A stretch of 57,376 nucleotides of DNA from Pelomyxa schiedti. Taxonomy: Eukaryota > Protista > Evosea. The stretch covers positions 1-57,376 of the forward strand of contig JAHLWZ010000120.1 of assembly GCA_020536535.1 (NCBI GenBank). The letters are read 5' to 3'. The notes beneath the pieces were generated by a model. That model was not told the DNA's origin. It saw only the letters and a list, made by a program, of their open reading frames with translations, and ran no database searches. Both the position numbers and the translations under genes were made by a program. The number at the start of each line of letters is the position of its first letter. The stretch's first letter is position 1. Shown here in pieces: positions 18,156 through 31,268 of the stretch.

Positions 18156-21100
18156 ATGGCAACTTCCCAGGCTACTGCCACCGCAACGTCGTTGGCTAGG
18201 GATGTTGTTGCCTCTCTTCCAGTTGCCGACCTTGTAGAGGCGTATGTTGTCCTTTCTTCTTTGGTTTGTTCGTGCTTTGTTTTTGTTTTTGTTTTTGTTT
18301 TTGTTTTTGTTTTTGTTTTTGTGTTTTTTTAACCCTATTTCAAGATTTGAGCAGCAGGTAAACAATGCACTCTCTAAGGTTCGACACTCTTTCCAAAGAA
18401 TAGTGTCGGGCACAGGCGTAAAGGGCACCAAAACCACAATTGGTTGCACCTTACAGTTCGATGTGAAATCCGTTGAAGCGTTGCTTCAAATCCTCCCGTC
18501 AATACTGGGCTCATTCCAAGTTACGCTGCCTTCTGATGTATGGCTTAGCTGTATTGAGAGCACTGAAATTGAGTGCCACTGTAAATGGGATTTGAAGGCT
18601 GCTACTCCAATCACGCAGAATTCGGGCACTACTGCCGCACTTATTGCACAGAAGCTCATGCCCGCTTCCATTGAGATCAAAATTGAGCGTTGCATTGTCA
18701 TAGCACTCAAGGAACACAAGTGGAAGTTTTCTGTTTCCAGCAAGTCAGTTGAAACTGTATTTCGTTGTCTGAAGAAACTCCTGTCCACCGCTATCGAAAT
18801 TCCGCCAGAGCTTTTGGAGTTACGGTTTCTTCAGCCCTTGCTCAGCAAAATAAATTTGGAAATTGCTGGCATATTTGGGGAGCCGAAGTCTATCAAAGTA
18901 AATATGAAAGAAAAAGTTGTCTCTCTTTCCTTGCTGAGGAAACCCTCCTGGGCATGGGATATTTGTATTGAAAAGAAATCTGTTTCCCAGGCACTCGAAA
19001 AGTTGGGGAGTCTGGGTATCAGTTTACCAAATTGTTCCTTTCTCGATTCCGTTCTTGACAACCTCAAAGTCACGGTTCATGCGGGCTACAGTTCTGGCTC
19101 TATTGTTCTCAAAAATCTGCACCTCCAGGATAATGAGGGAACTATATCTATTGGTGGGAAAAAGCCTTCTACAAGCAGTTGGGAGTGGACTGTCACTTGC
19201 GATAGCAAACCGGCAATTGCAGCTCTCAAGCTATTGACCCAAGTTCTCCCCATCAGAATACCGATCCCCACTTGCTTTGATGACTTGCTTGCCAAGTTGC
19301 AACTAAGCTTCAATGGAATCTTGGCTGGTGAAAAACCCTTCACAGTGAAAACTTTGAACATGTGGAATACCGAAAAAATTCTCGCCATCAGCTTGGAGAA
19401 AAACTTTGAGTGGAACATCGCAATTGACAGGAAGCCTGCAGACCAGGCGCTTAAGCTGCTTTCGGATATCGTGAAAGCTCTTCCAGGCAGTCCATGCTTG
19501 CCAGACACATCTTTCCTTGACCCGCTTCTCAGTAACCTTGAAATCACGTTCCATGCCACCGTCGGCATCAGCAAGTTTAAGTTCTCCCTGCAGCTGCAAG
19601 ATAGCGAACGTATTTTATCTGTGAGCTTGCAGAGCGAATCAAGGGTATGGGAAATTGCGATATGCGACAAGCCTTTGCAGAAGGCCTTAAACTTGATCAA
19701 CAAGATATTTACAAGTTTCCCGGACCTGCACTTTCTGGACCCTCTCACCAGCAAGTTGCAGCTGGGCTTTCGTGCCATAATTGGGTCTGGTCAACCATTC
19801 AGCATCAAAACACTTCAACTGCAAGATCCCGAAAAGATTCTAGACGTTTGTCTGCCGCATGGTGCCGACTCCTGGTCCTTTTCCATTCAAGAAAAACCTG
19901 CAGAGAAGGCTTTCCTGATGCTAAGGTCTTTCACATCTTCGTTTTTACCATTGCAAATGGAGTCCCTTCAATTCATGGACGCATTTCTCTCGCACTTAAC
20001 AGTAAGCCTGCATGCAAGACCACCTAAGTTCACAATTTCCCACTTTGAACTTTGCTTCATAGCCGGAAAATTCAAGGTCAGGACCCCACCCCACAATTAT
20101 CTGAAACTTCTAAACTTATTTATTCTTCACATAGGCACTGATTACGTACAAGGAGGGTGAATGGATATTCAAAACAGAGAAGTTCACCCTGCAGGATGTT
20201 ATTCAGGCAACGGAAGTTATACCGGGCCTCACCACTGCCCTGTCACCCATTCGAACCAAAATTGGAGATTGTGAGTTCTTGTCCAAGATCGTTTCCAGTT
20301 TCGTTGTCTCTGCTGAAGTTAGACTGTACCCTAATTTCGAGGTGTGCCGCTTTGAGGCCACCTACGAAAGCTTGCTTCTCCTTGGAATGGAACTTACAGT
20401 TTGCTGCCGGTTTCAGGACCAAAGATTCACCATAACGTGCAGCTCGAAGCGGCCTGTAAGCCTGGCCGAAATACTTTCCAGCTTTGGCATCGATTGCAGT
20501 GAAGTACCAGGACTCGGCGGCGCTTTGAAAGGCATTCAGCTCCAGGTTGTTGAAGCTACATTAGGCGTGAAGCCTACGTCTATATTCGTCAACCTTGCAG
20601 TTTCAGCTGGCAGCGCCAACGCTTTTGTATACGTTTTCAAAGAGGGTGAGCACAGTGTCTTGAGTGCCAAGCTGAACCCTCACTCCAAGGATTTGTTTGA
20701 CCTTAAGGGTATGATAGGCGTAGAAGTCATCGAGCTGGGAGTCGTGTATGTTTCCAACAACTTTGATGCCGAGTCGACACCCCAGTGTCTTATTCCTACG
20801 GTCAAGGATTCGGCGCACGGATTTTCACTTAGTGGCAAGTTGCAACTGTTTGGTTGGCTCCCAGAAACGCTGCACTTTGCTGGCCGGCAGTTTGACTTTG
20901 TGTACTCCCTCGAGAAAAATAAAATTTCGATCAGCATGCCTTCTATTCCCAATGCTACCCTGAACCTATCTCTTTCTACCAAAAGCGTTGACATGAAGTG
21001 GAAAACAGATATCGCTGGTCTTTCCATGGATATGTCCATTGGGGCAAGTCTTTCAGACATGAGGGTCATGGCGTCTCTCTGCCTAAATGGGCCTATTTCT

Positions 21101-24100
21101 TTTCCTGCAGGATTGCCAATATTGAGTAATTTGCAGATTAACTCGCTGAAAGGTTCGATGGCTGTTTCTCCTTCAGAGTTCTCCGGCAGTTTTGGAGCGT
21201 CCCTGTCCATTAAAGGCTGTGACCCCACACCCAAACTTGAAGCTTGCATATGCTTGACCTCTGCAGAACCTCACATCCGTGAGATTTACTTCGATGCAAC
21301 CAATCTGAGCTTCAGTTCTATTTTCAGGGCGGTTGGACTGCGACCTGAAGCAATCTCCTGGATGGATAAAATCTTCTCGATTTATAAGCTTGCAATGCTC
21401 ATAAAAATAGCAACTGGAAGCTCTTGCATGCCCCCAGATATGATCACAAACGAGAAAATACGCGACTTTGTCGCCCCACCCAGAGGTCAAGGGACAGTTT
21501 TTGTATTTGAATGTCATGTCAATTTACTTGGTGTGAAGCCGTACTTGTTTGCTGCAGCAGATATTGGCCCAGAGCTGCGTCTCAAAATCGAAGTTTCCGT
21601 GCCAGCATTTGAGGTGAAAATCAAGTCGTTCACATTGCTGACCCTGAATGGAGGGAACCCTTCAGCACCACTGACAGGAAATTTCGACCTTGATACCGCA
21701 ACGAAGACGCTGACGGGTGACTTCAAGGGCTCCCTCAGCATTCTCAGTTGTATGAACATCGCCTGTACAATGAACTTAAAAAAGTCTGGAGAGAAGAGGA
21801 CAAGGATGGATCTTCACGTGCTGATAAACTTGCTGGGCATTTCACTTGAAGGAAGCTGCTTCGTGCTTCTGGAGACTCCTTCCTTTCCCCTGAGTCTTTC
21901 ACCTGTGCCTTTTCCGAAATCAGCCAAACTGGATCTTCGCATGACAAGTAAAGGAGGAGTCCTTGGCACTCTCATAAAGTCCCTCTCAGACGCCGTCCAC
22001 GGATTTGTGGAAACGCTCACTAATGCAATAAACGAGATCACTAACAAAATTGAAAGAGAGAGCGAAGGGAAGTGGTGGGCTCCGTTCGCTAAAGTTGCAA
22101 CAGCATTACTGAAGGTTGCAAACTTTTTACTGGAAAAGGCTCAACAGGCTCTCGATTTTGTTGCTTCAGTTGCCAGGTGGATCGCTTCTAAAGGACTCGA
22201 CATCAATTACTTTTCAATTGGAGGGGAAGTTGGTGGTGAGGACGGAGTCGAGTTCTACGTCTTTATTGAGTGCAAAGTCTTTGGGATATCCTTAAAAGGA
22301 GGGGTTCATCTCAGGCTGGCGAGCTGGCTTAAAGATCTCTGTAAAAAGATTGCTCAAATGATTTGCAATGGAAGAGCTGGTGGTGGGGAACATGGCAATC
22401 AGCTGGGTGATTATTATGAAGGTGAAGATGATGAGGATGAATCGGGGAAAAGATACTTCCGCAACCGTTGCCCGGGGACTGGGACCAAAACTGAAGATGT
22501 GGTACTGGATGGTTTTAATGTGCATTGTACGGGAGGTGAGTCGAAATTTACCAAGCTGCAGGAGGCAAAAGACAAACTTGAGAAGCAGCTCTCTGACCCG
22601 AGTAGCAACCTCAATATGGAGCCTCCAGAAGATAACCCCAACTCAGAACCACCCCCCAGCAATAATAACAATAAGGACTCTCCTCGCAATGATCAGAAAC
22701 CACCACCACCACCCAAACCCAATACCAACTCTTCACCCCCCACCAAGCAGGAAAGACAACAGTCATTCCAATGCCAGGACCCATTTACTCACTGCGGTGT
22801 ATGGGGAGAAATGGGAGGTGACCCATTCAACTATGAGGGAAGTCCTTTGGGGGAAAGGGAGCCAGTAATAATGCCCCTGCCCAAAGAGTGCAAGCACTGC
22901 CACAAGCCCTTTAATGAGCAAACAACCACCTCAGCCGATGTTGACCGTCACAACAATTTTGAATGCGAGCAATACCCTCTGAAATGCATATATTGCAAGA
23001 AAGAGATTCCCCTGATACCACCTGGAACTACCGCACAACGGATGACAGCTCATCTGAAGCAATGCAACAACGCGGAGATTGCATGCCCATACTGCTTCAA
23101 GTCGTTCCCGAAATTAGTCTTTAATCAGCACGTGAGGGGATGCCAGCCTCTAAATTGCCCTGCAGCTGGCTGTCGCAGGAAGCTCCAAGGCTGTTGCCAC
23201 AAATGGAAAGCCTGTCCCTTGTGCAAAGGTCCATTCCAAGATTCAATTCAGACCCACCTTAGGACCCAGTGTAAATCGTTGACGATGTGCTGCCCAAACG
23301 AGTGCGGCGAAACTGGCCTCTGCAGGCGTGATCTGGAGACACACTTCCAGGAATGCAACAAAGCGAAGTGGATGTGCAGTCACTGCAGGGAATGGATCCC
23401 CTGGGTGGAATTCCCAACTCATGTTGCCAACTGTGGGGAATGGCCATGTCTGTTTTGCGGTGAGCTGACCAATTTAACTCCCTCCGAGTATGCTAGGCAT
23501 CTTGCAGAGTGTGGAGAATATAAGCGCCCATGCCCTTATTGCAGAAAAAATCTGCGCCCACGTGAACAGACTCAGCACTTGATTTGGAAGTGTATGGGGT
23601 TTAAGATAAAGTGCATTGCCGGTTGTGGCAGGTTGCTACCTGCATGCAAAATACCTGTGCACCTCAGGGACCAGTGCCAAGCCGTCCATGTAAACTGCCC
23701 AATACTGGGGTGCTCTTTAGCTTACCCACGCTCATACGAATCACAGCACCTTGGTAATGACTGCAAGTACTTCACGCATACTTGTTGCTTCAGTGGTCGG
23801 TGCTTCGAGTATTACAGGCGGCAAGAAGAGCGTGATCACTGGCAGAAGCACCACTTGCACAAACAACTTAGTGAAGTCACGGAACCAGACTGTACAGAGA
23901 ACTTGACACCAGGCAGCAATCTACGCCTGTTTTTACCAACTGACCTTCTCTACCTTGTCGATCCTCAACAAGTGCTGCATACTTACACCGAGATGCTGTA
24001 TGCAACCAACCAGGTGCTCCAGAGAAAAGAGAAGGAGTACATGAAGAAGTGCCGCTTCTGCTCACAAAACATGCGCGCGGTGTTCTTCCCGATTCATCGC

Positions 24101-25099
24101 GTCTGTCTGTGCATGAAGCAGCAGACGCGGTGCGCATACTGTGCTAAATGGGTTGTCTCCGGCAAATACTTCCAGCATGTATTCGAGGAGTGCACAGTCA
24201 CCGCCAAGTGCCGCTACTGCAACGAGCAGATGGAAAAATCGAGGCTCGTGGGGCACATGCAGCACTGCAACGGCGTTCCAGGAAGACAGCTTTGCACCAC
24301 ATGCTGGTGCATCACCGCCCACGAACCCAAAGACTGCCCGTCCAATCACGCGACGATGAGGTGCGTCGCGTGCAACAAGCTCTTTCCCACGAGATATAGG
24401 ATGAGCCACATGGCCACCTGCGAGAAGCGCCTCTGCGCGTGCCCCTTCTGCAAGAGTAGAGTTCCCCTGCGCGAGTACGACCTGCACATTCTCGGTTGCG
24501 ACGCCCCAGTGACCTGCAGGTGCGGCCAGGGATTCCAGTCCCGGGACTACTGCCGGCACCTTCTGGCATGCCCGAGCCAGGCAATCCAATGCGGCCTGTG
24601 CCAGCAGGAAGCCGACCCAGTGTCCACGTGGGCCTCGCACGTTATCTACGCCTGCCCCGTGTCGTTCCCCTGCCCTGTTGATGGCTCCGCCGCGAAAGCA
24701 GCAACAAAACCCAGCAGGTGCCCGTGCCGGCTGAGACTCTGCGACCTGGAATCTCACGTGGCGCCCGAGTCTGACGGGTCGGCAGAGTCCAGGTCTCTGC
24801 TTGCCGACGCGTGCCAATCTGTCAGGACGGTGTGCCCCGTGAGGCCCGGCCCTTGCCCGGGCGAATTCCCGATCCGGGAGCTGGGGCACCATCTGGAGCA
24901 CGCTTGCAGGTTCAACTTCGTGGGGTGCCCTCTTGGCTGCGACAAGGCCGACCTGGCTCTGAAGGATGTCGACGAGCACGTCAACGCGATGGGTGTCTGC
25001 CCGAAGCGCAAGTACATATGCCCTTGTGGAGAGAGTGATTGCCAGTGGTTTCTGTCCCAGCTCCGTTCGGGAGCACCCATACCCTGGAACGGCCTGTGA
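18156..25099 (+). CDS. ~2260-aa protein: N-terminal ~65-70-aa repeats, long beta-rich region, amphipathic helices, Pro/Asn linker, ~20 TRAF-type zinc fingers
   Basis: Exons 18156-18241, 18345-20076 and 20135-25099 join the 638-aa and 1606-aa ORFs in frame through GT-AG introns. The C-terminal third is tandem C-x2-4-C-x11-13-H-x3-4-C units (e.g. CPNECGETGLCRRDLETHFQEC, CPYCRKNLRPREQTQHLIWKC). Confidence 0.85.
18276..18322. repeat. (TTTTTG)n microsatellite in intron 1 of the giant gene
   Basis: Direct reading; about 7-8 units. Confidence 0.9.
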
Positions 25100-28953: not shown

Positions 28954-31268
28954 ATGACCGAAGGCCCTGCGGAGATACGCCGCGTCATGACGTTGTCTCG
29001 TGTGGTGTGGGACTTCGTCATCGTTCCCACAATCCTCGACCCCGCCGTCTCTCGTTGCGACTACATGACCTTCGAGGGCTGCTGCTGGCTCGCGGGCGTC
29101 GCGGACGCCCTTTTCCCCCTTGTCCCGAGGGCCTGCCGCGCACTTATGGGCGCCACCCTGACGAACTGCAACGACTCCGGCGTCGGCGAGTACACCTACC
29201 TCGTCACGTCGCGGTACGTCCCCCTCGAGTGCGCCGCGATCGTCGGGAGCACGAGGTGCATCGAGTGGATCCTGGCGCACACGAGAACGAGGAACCCGAG
29301 GAAGGAGTCCATCGAAGTGCTCGAGTCTCTTTGCATTGGTAACTAGTTCGTCACTGAAATGGGCTTATGGGATTAAATGTTACATAAATATATTAACAGG
29401 TGTTTATTGTCTCTTTAATAAGTGAATTGCGAGTCTCTTTGCATTGGGAGTTGTTAAAGCTTATATTACCATGAAGCCATAAAAAAATAACACTCCATCT
29501 ATAATATTAATATTAAATAATTGTTGTTTTGAGTTGTGAAGAATATTGTCATTGATTTGTGTAAAACGTATTGATTGTTATTGTAGGAGGAAAGCTTGTG
29601 ATGGCACAGGAGTTCGTTGACAGTGGAGATATACCGTGGAGGGGAGGCTCATTGAGGTGGCCTGTGCATGATGCTGATATGCTGGATTCCCTCAGGGAGA
29701 TGAGTGAATTCTCCACCACAAGCCTTTTATATGACGCATGCAGAGGAGGCAATTTGGCTGTTGTCAAGTGGGTCATGACGAGGTTTGTTGGCCTGGGTGC
29801 GGAGCCGTGGGAGCTTGTGGGACCGTTTGAAAATGCTCTGAGACAGGGCAATATTGAGGTTGCGCAGTGGATGGAATCCTCAACTGGTGTGGTTAACTCC
29901 TGCAAGCCACATATTGTCATACCAAATCGCCCGTGTGCTGCTAGTGTATTTTTGGATGTTGTGAAGCTCTGCATGAGGGTGTTCAAGCTGAATCGTTGTG
30001 ATATAGAGGAATGTGGCCCTGAGATTATGGCGAAGTTCATCCAGCATTGTTCAAATGAGCAAAGTGGTCACGAATTTCAGGCAGGGTGTGCGTGGATCAA
30101 AGAAAATTTTGGCATGAAGAAGTTCAGGAAGATTCGTTGGATCAAAGGCAGCAGGGGTCTCAAGTGGATCGTCACCAATTTTCCTGTCAAACCAACACAG
30201 GAGCTGCTTTCGCATGCATGCAAATCAACTGATTTGGAGCTTGTTGACTGGCTGTTTGCCAAATTGCGTTTTGGGGAAGTGACCCCAAAAACAATCAAGA
30301 GTGCATGTGCAAACGAGAAGGACAACGTCGAAATTGTGAAGAGTTTGTTGGCCAAAGTTCCACGTCCCACCCCAGATTTTGAGCGCAGCTTACTGGAGAA
30401 ATCTCTTTCCCGAAACAACACTGCCATTGGAGAGTGGTTGGATAACACATTCCACGTGATGGCAGCTGTGAATTCTGTTCCCAGCGATACAGAGAGCCTA
30501 TTCTCTAAGTTGTGCGCCAAGAACCAAGGTGGAATGGGGGGAATTCAGTGGTTCCTTTCACGTGCAACAATGCGCAACATCAGTGGAAAAACAGTTCTCT
30601 CAGCCGTCGAGGAATCACCTTGCATCACCCTCACGTTGTTTTTGATGAAGCAGTTCAATGTAAGCATTGCTCATAAGCCGTCAATCATCAGGAAGCTGCT
30701 TGAAGACGGGGATGTTTCACAGGCCAAGCAACTTGTCACCTCTGCTGAACTGTTCTCTTCATCTGAGGTTCAGGAGGCCTTTTCAGAGAGTTACCAAGTG
30801 CAGTCCGGAAAAGTGGTCAAGTGGGTGTTGCAGCAGTTTCACCTGAGTGAAGACCAAGTCAAGGTGAATGACAACCAGTTGTTGGCGAACCTGATTCACT
30901 CGAACAAGGTCGGGTGCACAGAGTGGTTCATCCACACATTCCAGGTGAGGGTGGATGAGCTAGTCAGAATGGCTGAGCGGACCAAGTGCCACGGCATCAC
31001 CTTGAGCATGTGGAAGATGCTGATGCGAGTGCTTCCTGAAATGACGGCGTCCATCGTGAGGAGCCACTTCATGAAATGGGCGGTCACGACGCCACTGCAC
31101 ACCACAGTCACAATGAGAACTCTGGGTATCACAAAGGCTGATGTAGACTCGTACAAACAAGATAGTCACGACGACGAAAGTGACGAAAGCGACGAAGGCG
31201 ACGATAGCGATGATAGTGACTACAGTGACACTGATGAGGACAGTTCCGCAGAAGACAGCGATGAATAA
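28954..31268 (+). CDS. ankyrin-like 'SRVVWD' family protein (A1), 2 exons, acidic tail
   Basis: Exons 28954-29338 and 29587-31268 join in frame (SLCIG|GKLVMAQ). Ankyrin-like motifs LLYDACRGGNLAVVKW, ALRQGNIEVAQW, HACKSTDLELVDWL. D/E/S-rich C-terminus. Confidence 0.85.

Follow-up and report, generated by a model that had tools for sequence, protein, structure and literature searches.

Does a very large gene of the anaerobic archamoeba Pelomyxa schiedti, whose product joins a long amphipathic beta region to an array of zinc fingers, encode a lipid-transfer bridge of the VPS13/AsmA type? The gene lies on the forward strand at positions 18156 to 25099 of contig JAHLWZ010000120.1, the whole 57,376-nucleotide stretch of which was analyzed (here called the window). 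The database calls its product "hypothetical protein Pelo_1443 [Pelomyxa schiedti]" (2,229 amino acids [aa]). A reading of the letters alone, here called the sequence-only reading, had proposed a single gene for a VPS13- or AsmA-like beta-groove rod capped by about 20 TRAF-type fingers. We find that Pelo_1443 is, as far as sequence profiles can recognize, not a member of the VPS13/AsmA families, which comprise the repeating beta-groove (RBG) proteins or bridge-like proteins for lipid transfer (BLTPs). It belongs instead to a six-gene Pelomyxa family, and may be an elongated cytosolic scaffold or tether.

We read the gene as three exons with 2,260 codons and zero internal stops. Exon 1 (18156 to 18241; 28 codons plus 2 bases) starts at the ATG at 18156 and encodes the N terminus MATSQATATA, identical in deposited Pelo_1443. 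Within intron 1 (18242 to 18344; phase 2, GTATGT...AG), a (GTTTTT)n microsatellite occupies window positions 18262 to 18322 and gives rise to the spurious FLFLFL N terminus of a 638-aa mechanical open reading frame (ORF); splicing restores the frame. Exon 2 (18345 to 20076) has 577 full codons and is followed by intron 2 (20077 to 20134; 58 nucleotides [nt], GT...CTAAC...AG, phase 0). Exon 3 (20135 to 25099; 1,654 codons plus the stop) runs without interruption from the beta region through the last zinc finger, and because it is a single open frame, the link between beta core and fingers needs no splice. The start, the stop, and both introns agree with those deposited; that model came from Augustus, PASA, and EVM plus the authors' transcriptome in the work that described the P. 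schiedti genome (PMC8887013). The proposal that two short introns join the 638-aa ORF to a 1606-aa ORF in one gene of about 2260 aa is therefore borne out by both junctions, with canonical signals and an exact frame, and by the deposited model, which is also one gene. By this reading of the DNA, exons 1 to 3 form one gene for one polypeptide.

Exon 2 carries six tandem repeats of about 76 aa (18742 to 20064, forward strand; exon-2 aa 133 to 573), delimited by fragment BLAST, a repeat hidden Markov model (HMM), alignment, and periodicity. Their mutual identity is 25 to 42%, and the repeat HMM detects them at E values of 1e-17 to 1e-31. Column-wise hydrophobic periodicity resolves the unit into a 15-residue amphipathic helix (KPxxQALxLLxxI), a short helix (FLDxLLSxL), four period-2 amphipathic strands, and a terminal WxWxI. 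This expansion is unique to Pelo_1443 within the six-gene family, with one marginal copy in a paralog (C601; E = 0.006). Exon 2 has no paralog in its own genome and matches no known family, and an ESM Atlas feature search with it returned nothing.

The repeats also bear on the one place where the deposited model departs from ours, an extra third intron at 19926 to 20018 (forward strand; 93 nt, in frame, 31 aa) that is probably coding. These 31 aa correspond to the helix-2 and strand-1 portion of repeat 6, and an HMM made from repeats 1 to 5 only scored repeat 6 at 17.8 bits (E = 2e-7) with them and at 1.0 bit without them. Because the repeat HMM fits only with the 31 aa kept, the 2,260-aa reading is better than the public model at this site; the third intron is probably false and the deposited protein 31 aa too short.

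It is highly improbable that this gene structure is an annotation artefact, with exons 2 and 3 being separately transcribed genes or the locus a decaying pseudogene. Such an artefact would fit the lack of any exon-2 paralog, the absence of detectable similarity between exon 2 and the remainder (repeat profile against the family N-terminal region, hhalign E = 0.36), and our failure to recover the second half of repeat 6 across intron 2. However, canonical splice sites and a canonical branch point are present, frame continuity is exact over 2,260 stop-free codons, and the transcriptome-informed deposited model makes the identical exon join. Moreover, the exon-3 frame has no Met near its start, the first falling at aa 85 within a unit conserved among paralogs, and in all five paralogs the same ORF extends for 200 to 900 aa on the N-terminal side of the residue aligned with exon-3 aa 1.

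Residues 1 to 745 of exon 3 (about 750 aa) align with five other loci of the P. schiedti genome (all own-genome searches covered the 52-Mb assembly of 5,337 contigs). A core profile built from four members detected six loci at 412 to 891 bits (C120, which is Pelo_1443, and C795, C877, C187, C601, and C1219). Pelo_1443 scored 685 bits and is the most divergent of the six. The family is defined by a core of about 560 aa ending in DLCKK and followed by a long array of C2HC fingers, and Pelo_1443 has both. The core ORF terminates in DLCKK in four of the paralogs and in DIAKK in the fifth, C601; all five have a large Cys-rich ORF downstream of the core, with zf-TRAF or CEP104_ZnF matches, and CEP104-type finger matches are present in every paralog. 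Finger arrays of 24, 26, 20, and 25 units occur within the family, and those of C187, C795, and C601 are collinear end to end at 37 to 40% identity. In C795, a phase-0 GT...AG intron lies directly after the CKK codons (L006 6036 to 6100, reverse strand), whereas Pelo_1443 has no such intron (22340 to 22360). The core ORFs of the other paralogs stop at the same point, and the post-CKK intron may thus have been lost in Pelo_1443 or gained in the others.

One paralog departs from the common plan: at C1219:1567-5715 (reverse strand), about seven fingers are followed by a URGCP-like GTPase and a second P-loop, all in a single 1,383-aa ORF. The URGCP_GTPase match (E = 3e-14, 52.9 bits) falls just below the cutoff of 55, and the second P-loop has weak nSTAND and septin matches. 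Separately, we observed by eye that aa ~370 to 425 (QVDWQGRKIWFSIK...LYPAVHLHGKSE) of the 600-aa N-terminal part of the C877 paralog (L008 3843 to 5642, forward strand) resemble the end of a SPRY/B30.2 domain; Pfam gave no match there at E ≤ 1.

Relatives were sought widely, with single exons as queries or with deposited Pelo_1443 as the sole joined sequence. Pfam, NCBIfam, and PADLOC searches of exon 2, exon-3 pieces, and the six paralogs returned only zinc-finger families and, in one paralog, URGCP_GTPase. An exhaustive HMMER search with Pelo_1443 aa 1 to 1200 against 1.84 billion representatives found the protein itself only; run with a single sequence, it would fail to detect relatives at the distance of the paralogs (about 37 bits). 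Word-index searches with exon-3 aa 1 to 800, a profile (A3), and the C877 core returned their own entries only; these are weak blanks, as the limit of 8,000 candidates was reached and the paralogs were also not returned. Profiles made from the core and the 76-aa repeat matched no PDB sequence below E = 0.4, and scanning the contigs of metagenomes and prokaryote genomes with degenerate patterns gave no confirmed relative. ESM Atlas features of exon-3 aa 1 to 800 pointed to unnamed bacterial clusters at 0.88 to 0.91, with low recognition. The beta part, having no Pfam, NCBIfam, PADLOC, or PDB-sequence match, can therefore be called undescribed, as the sequence-only reading had supposed, and the six genes appear to be a lineage-specific paralog family, with no relative found outside P. 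schiedti in searches that did not extend directly to other Archamoebae.

The shared part of exon 3 begins with two units, each composed of helices and a four-strand meander, followed by more strands (20135 to 20818, forward strand; exon-3 aa 1 to 228; AlphaFold2 predicted local distance difference test [pLDDT] of 60 to 75), and is delimited by the paralog alignment. In the AlphaFold2 models, DSSP assigns two helices and four strands per unit within exon-3 aa 19 to 181. The beta part of the family core follows (20819 to 21934, forward strand; exon-3 aa 229 to 600), as defined by paralog alignments, the own-genome profile search, AlphaFold2, and strand-face analysis. Its paralog-conserved motifs are DGPxP, GSxxR, and SYKDV, the last in the paralogs. 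Within it, the model of exon-3 aa 229 to 392 contains twelve strands of 6 to 13 residues and one five-residue helix near the start (pLDDT 75 to 87). Two models were made, of exon-3 aa 1 to 800 with the six-paralog alignment (pLDDT 55.5, predicted template-modeling score [pTM] 0.40) and of exon-3 aa 1 to 445 (pLDDT 66, pTM 0.52). Both show long antiparallel meanders, with two units of helices plus four strands followed by twelve consecutive strands. In the 23 strands modelled for exon-3 aa 1 to 445, the two faces average +2.1 and -0.8 on the Kyte-Doolittle scale, a pattern conserved among paralogs, and the polar face is rich in Ser. These strand faces substantiate the alternating hydrophobic beta pattern that had been claimed for about 1300 aa.

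The beta part gives way to two amphipathic helices of about 38 residues each (21950 to 22195, forward strand; exon-3 aa 606 to 687), predicted by AlphaFold2 with DSSP to form an antiparallel hairpin at low pLDDT. The hairpin is amphipathic, with a hydrophobic moment of 0.5 to 0.8 in all six paralogs, and in none of the six is any window of it hydrophobic enough to span a membrane. A small beta unit and a helix ending in DLCKK close the conserved core (22196 to 22369, forward strand; exon-3 aa 688 to 745), the helix occupying exon-3 aa 728 to 745. The window from 21950 to 22369, with its two long helices and this further one, matches the amphipathic helical stretch that had been placed at about 21955 to 22370. 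Next comes a linker of low complexity, acidic and then Pro/Asn rich (22370 to 22888, forward strand), seen in the translation as had been described, with pLDDT below 40 as far as the model reaches (exon-3 aa 800). The translations of Pelo_1443 show neither a signal peptide nor a membrane span.

The remainder of the protein is an array of about 20 TRAF-type C2HC zinc fingers (22889 to 25054, forward strand; exon-3 aa 919 to 1640), identified by regular expression and Pfam and collinear with the paralog arrays. A Cys-poor spacer evident in the translation (23852 to 24049, forward strand; exon-3 aa 1240 to 1305) divides the fingers into groups of about 12 and about 8 to 11. Non-overlapping C-x-C...H...C units number 20 by regular expression and 20 to 23 by eye. 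Pfam zf-TRAF (PF02176) matches the array at 29.3 bits, above its gathering score of 27 (E = 1.4e-6, three stretches). These counts and the zf-TRAF match uphold the earlier description of about 20 to 23 TRAF-type fingers. When the array was searched in pieces, three of four matched zf-TRAF (E = 5e-5 to 5e-4) and one of four matched CEP104_ZnF; the segment at 23255 to 23407 exceeded the zf-TRAF cutoff in the own-genome scan, and weaker matches to TRAF6_Z2, Sina_ZnF, and CEP104_ZnF were also obtained. No Pfam match to zf-RING, MATH, or TRAF-C was found anywhere in Pelo_1443. The array shares C2HC units of TRAF-type spacing with TRAF2 to TRAF6, XAF1, TRAFD1, and CEP104, which have 1 to 7 fingers each. 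Unlike these proteins, Pelo_1443 has about 20 consecutive fingers joined to an unrelated beta/helix region of 1,400 aa, and unlike the TRAF1 to TRAF7 adaptors it lacks a RING, a MATH/TRAF-C domain, and a coiled coil. As a side observation, the two best zf-TRAF matches genome-wide (45.9 and 36.3 bits) fall within a frame of 319 aa at C795:58166-58504 (reverse strand), about 10 kb from the C795 paralog.

Is the beta region, then, a bridge of the known kind? In BLTPs, an N-terminal Chorein scoop feeds a half-open hydrophobic tube of 6 to 17 RBG units, and each unit consists of five antiparallel strands curved into a U with a loop at its end (PMC12066543). Pfam gave no VPS13_N/Chorein_N match with exon 2 and exon-3 pieces (E ≤ 0.1) or with the six paralogs (E ≤ 1). 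Likewise, AsmA, TamB, YhdP, and DUF6603 (PF05170, PF04357, and PF13116 included) gave no Pfam match in the six paralogs at E ≤ 1, and NCBIfam gave none. As a positive control, a whole-genome search with PF12624 found VPS13_N at no fewer than six other loci, none of them on the Pelo_1443 contig. Those loci include C177, C895, C951, C682, C803, and C842/C862; the stretches C842:47140-47535 and C862:47124-47519 score identically for VPS13_N, which suggests a duplicated or redundantly assembled stretch. The modelled units of Pelo_1443 also differ from RBG units, having two helices and four strands in place of five strands, and the twelve-strand meander that follows them has no unit-ending loops. 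Its N terminus contains no Chorein scoop and no membrane anchor, MATSQATATA not being hydrophobic. Membership in the VPS13/AsmA-type families, as first suggested, is not supported, given the absence of any profile match in Pelo_1443 or its paralogs, the different unit, and the missing scoop and anchor.

Comparisons of predicted shape were also made. Among the PDB matches listed (the top 50 each of Foldseek, the VIA wide search, and the VIA second look), there was no solved VPS13, ATG2, BLTP, or TamB chain. Foldseek against the PDB gave nothing at E ≤ 1e-3 for the 445-aa model and only two matches for the 800-aa model, ApoB100 (E = 7e-4, template-modeling score [TM] 0.20) and an LptDE chain (E = 9e-4, TM 0.13). 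The VIA wide search with the 800-aa model was dominated by the helical hairpin and uninformative. In the BFVD viral library, TM values were at most 0.29, including a weak Tupanvirus "Chorein N-terminal domain" row (E = 0.014, TM 0.12). Among the nearest shapes in the ESM Atlas were DUF6603 (TM 0.45), YhdP (0.41), LptD (0.41), TamB (0.36), and AsmA (0.35 to 0.37), all below 0.5; the YhdP, TamB, and AsmA models aligned over 240 to 270 residues at 6 to 7 Å. DUF6603, an uncharacterised bacterial family found mostly in Actinomycetota, thus comes closest in predicted shape (TM 0.45 by query, over 317 residues at 6.7 Å) and, among named clusters, is also closest by language-model features (0.78, weak), although both scores lie below the reliability lines of the tools. 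It has no sequence match to Pelo_1443, and PF20248 had no relevant match in the own genome or a control genome. We know of no function for DUF6603, and we found no literature on the family. Porins, Tom40/VDAC, ushers, LptD, and the ApoB100 beta-belt are farther from the Pelo_1443 models (root mean square deviation [RMSD] 10 to 17 Å, TM ≤ 0.28), and outer-membrane beta-barrels differ further in that Pelo_1443 is cytosolic by sequence and has helices interspersed among its strands. From these Foldseek and ESM Atlas results, we therefore interpret the modelled shape as an extended, curved, open meander sheet, nearer to the taco-type predicted models than to closed barrels. The AlphaFold and Foldseek comparison of exon-3 aa 1 to 800 and 1 to 445 thus recovered the extended meanders that had been anticipated, but every TM was below 0.5. 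Of the proposed bridge-like groove, what stands is a long amphipathic beta region followed by amphipathic helices; RBG/AsmA membership and a same-fold match do not.

The beta region could nevertheless be a groove that moves lipids along a hydrophobic concave face, either analogous or very remotely related to VPS13/ATG2/BLTP and AsmA/TamB/YhdP proteins, with helices touching the membrane and fingers serving as adaptors. We consider this unlikely. Pelo_1443 shares with BLTPs and AsmA-like proteins a very long antiparallel beta region with one hydrophobic face and amphipathic helices after the sheet; strict amphipathicity marks its strands through about 1,300 aa, in a pattern that the paralogs conserve, and no helices lie over the greasy face of the twelve-strand stretch (exon-3 aa 229 to 392), which would be the chief candidate for an open hydrophobic groove. 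YhdP, LptD, TamB, and AsmA are among the ten nearest ESM Atlas shapes, aligning at 6 to 7 Å compared with 10 to 14 Å for closed barrels, and the first Foldseek match of the 800-aa model is the lipid-wrapping ApoB100. Against these points stand the low TM values, the lack of any solved bridge protein among the PDB matches listed, and six paralogs devoid of superfamily Pfam matches while VPS13_N is readily found elsewhere in the genome. Its units, each with two helices and four strands, differ from the RBG unit of five strands and a loop (PMC12066543), and neither scoop nor anchor is present. Because each N-terminal unit has two amphipathic helices for every four strands, it could cover its own greasy face, which would leave no continuous groove there; only the helix-free stretch of about 165 aa clearly needs other cover. 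Unlike the conserved BLTPs, moreover, the family occurs as six copies in one amoeba that has canonical VPS13_N genes elsewhere in its genome. To our knowledge, no BLTP carries a zinc-finger array.

It is similarly doubtful that the protein is a purely structural beta-rich fiber or rod (cytoskeletal, cortical, or organelle-coat) in which sheets pair face to face through dimerisation or polymerisation and fingers cross-link. Tandem repeats and finger arrays that are collinear from end to end would suit a ruler-like rod, and the CEP104-type finger matches in all paralogs also count for a structural role. Nevertheless, the strands have one strongly hydrophobic face, unlike the sheets of TCP and OspA, of which both faces are polar. 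A membrane-inserting beta-barrel or pore-forming module, acting as an immune-type effector on the membranes of ingested or resident bacteria and either delivered or held in check by the finger array, is very unlikely. Strands of 10 to 13 residues in which hydrophobics alternate with Ser, Gly, and Thr do recall barrels and the stems of beta-pores, but the barrel comparisons have only meander topology in common (RMSD 10 to 14 Å). The protein is cytosolic without a targeting signal, its roughly 70 strands with interspersed helices are unlike any known barrel or pore former, and Pfam scans of Pelo_1443 and its paralogs gave no MACPF, aerolysin, or gasdermin signal. A broader conjecture, to which we give little credence, is that the six genes represent a new eukaryotic class of amphipathic beta sheets that handle lipid or membrane surfaces, either independent in origin of RBG/AsmA proteins or a relic of them in shape only, that are joined to a TRAF-type finger rod and in one paralog to a URGCP-like GTPase, and that could act as cell-autonomous sensors or effectors on the membranes of prokaryotes living in or eaten by the amoeba.

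We tentatively favor, short of an even chance, the interpretation of Pelo_1443 as an elongated cytosolic scaffold or tether within the six-gene Pelomyxa family. The alpha/beta repeat rod would lead into the conserved sheet with one greasy face. In the N-terminal units this face would be covered by their own amphipathic helices, and in the helix-free core it might be buried where the sheet curls round the amphipathic hairpin, or against a membrane surface or a hydrophobic ligand. The disordered linker would join the sheet to a rod of about 20 fingers, which would recruit protein partners as the fingers of TRAF, XAF1, and CEP104 do. The role might be in signaling or cell-autonomous surveillance rather than bulk lipid transport, a hint taken from the URGCP-like GTPase of the C1219 paralog and from the other TRAF-finger genes in this symbiont-rich amoeba. 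Several points weigh against this interpretation. Scaffold or tether function is suggested by architecture alone. AlphaFold2 confidence is moderate, with pLDDT below 50 for the hairpin and for everything after exon-3 aa 536, so that the packing of the hairpin is a guess from the model; the models cover exon-3 aa 1 to 800 only. The nearest shapes include the lipid-handling proteins YhdP, TamB, AsmA, and LptD, which favors a lipid-transfer groove. Finally, the URGCP match is just below the Pfam cutoff and occurs in one paralog only.

Elsewhere in the window, the neighboring ORF at 29571 to 31265 (forward strand, 565 aa) has a weak ankyrin-repeat match, and the seven other large ORFs match no Pfam family at E ≤ 1e-4.

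Orphan giant proteins are common in under-sampled protists. About 1,400 residues of Pelo_1443, and the core that it shares with its paralogs, match no sequence family among 1.84 billion representative proteins and have no solved or predicted same-fold match, with the caveat that the models may represent a remote AsmA/DUF6603-like fold. Because these pre-finger residues match no described family or fold, Pelo_1443 would be new as a whole, its finger array being of a familiar type. Our analysis further amends the public gene model, in which a probably false intron of 93 nt deletes 31 aa, and defines a clonable target of six genes with a conserved core of 560 aa and, in Pelo_1443, an intron-free junction from core to fingers. 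Elsewhere, a beta pattern with one greasy face is typical of proteins that handle lipids. Should the sheet bind lipid or membrane, the family would be a second, independent solution to the bridge problem solved by VPS13/AsmA proteins, coupled to zinc fingers of a signaling type; if it does not, the family would be a new kind of long beta rod.

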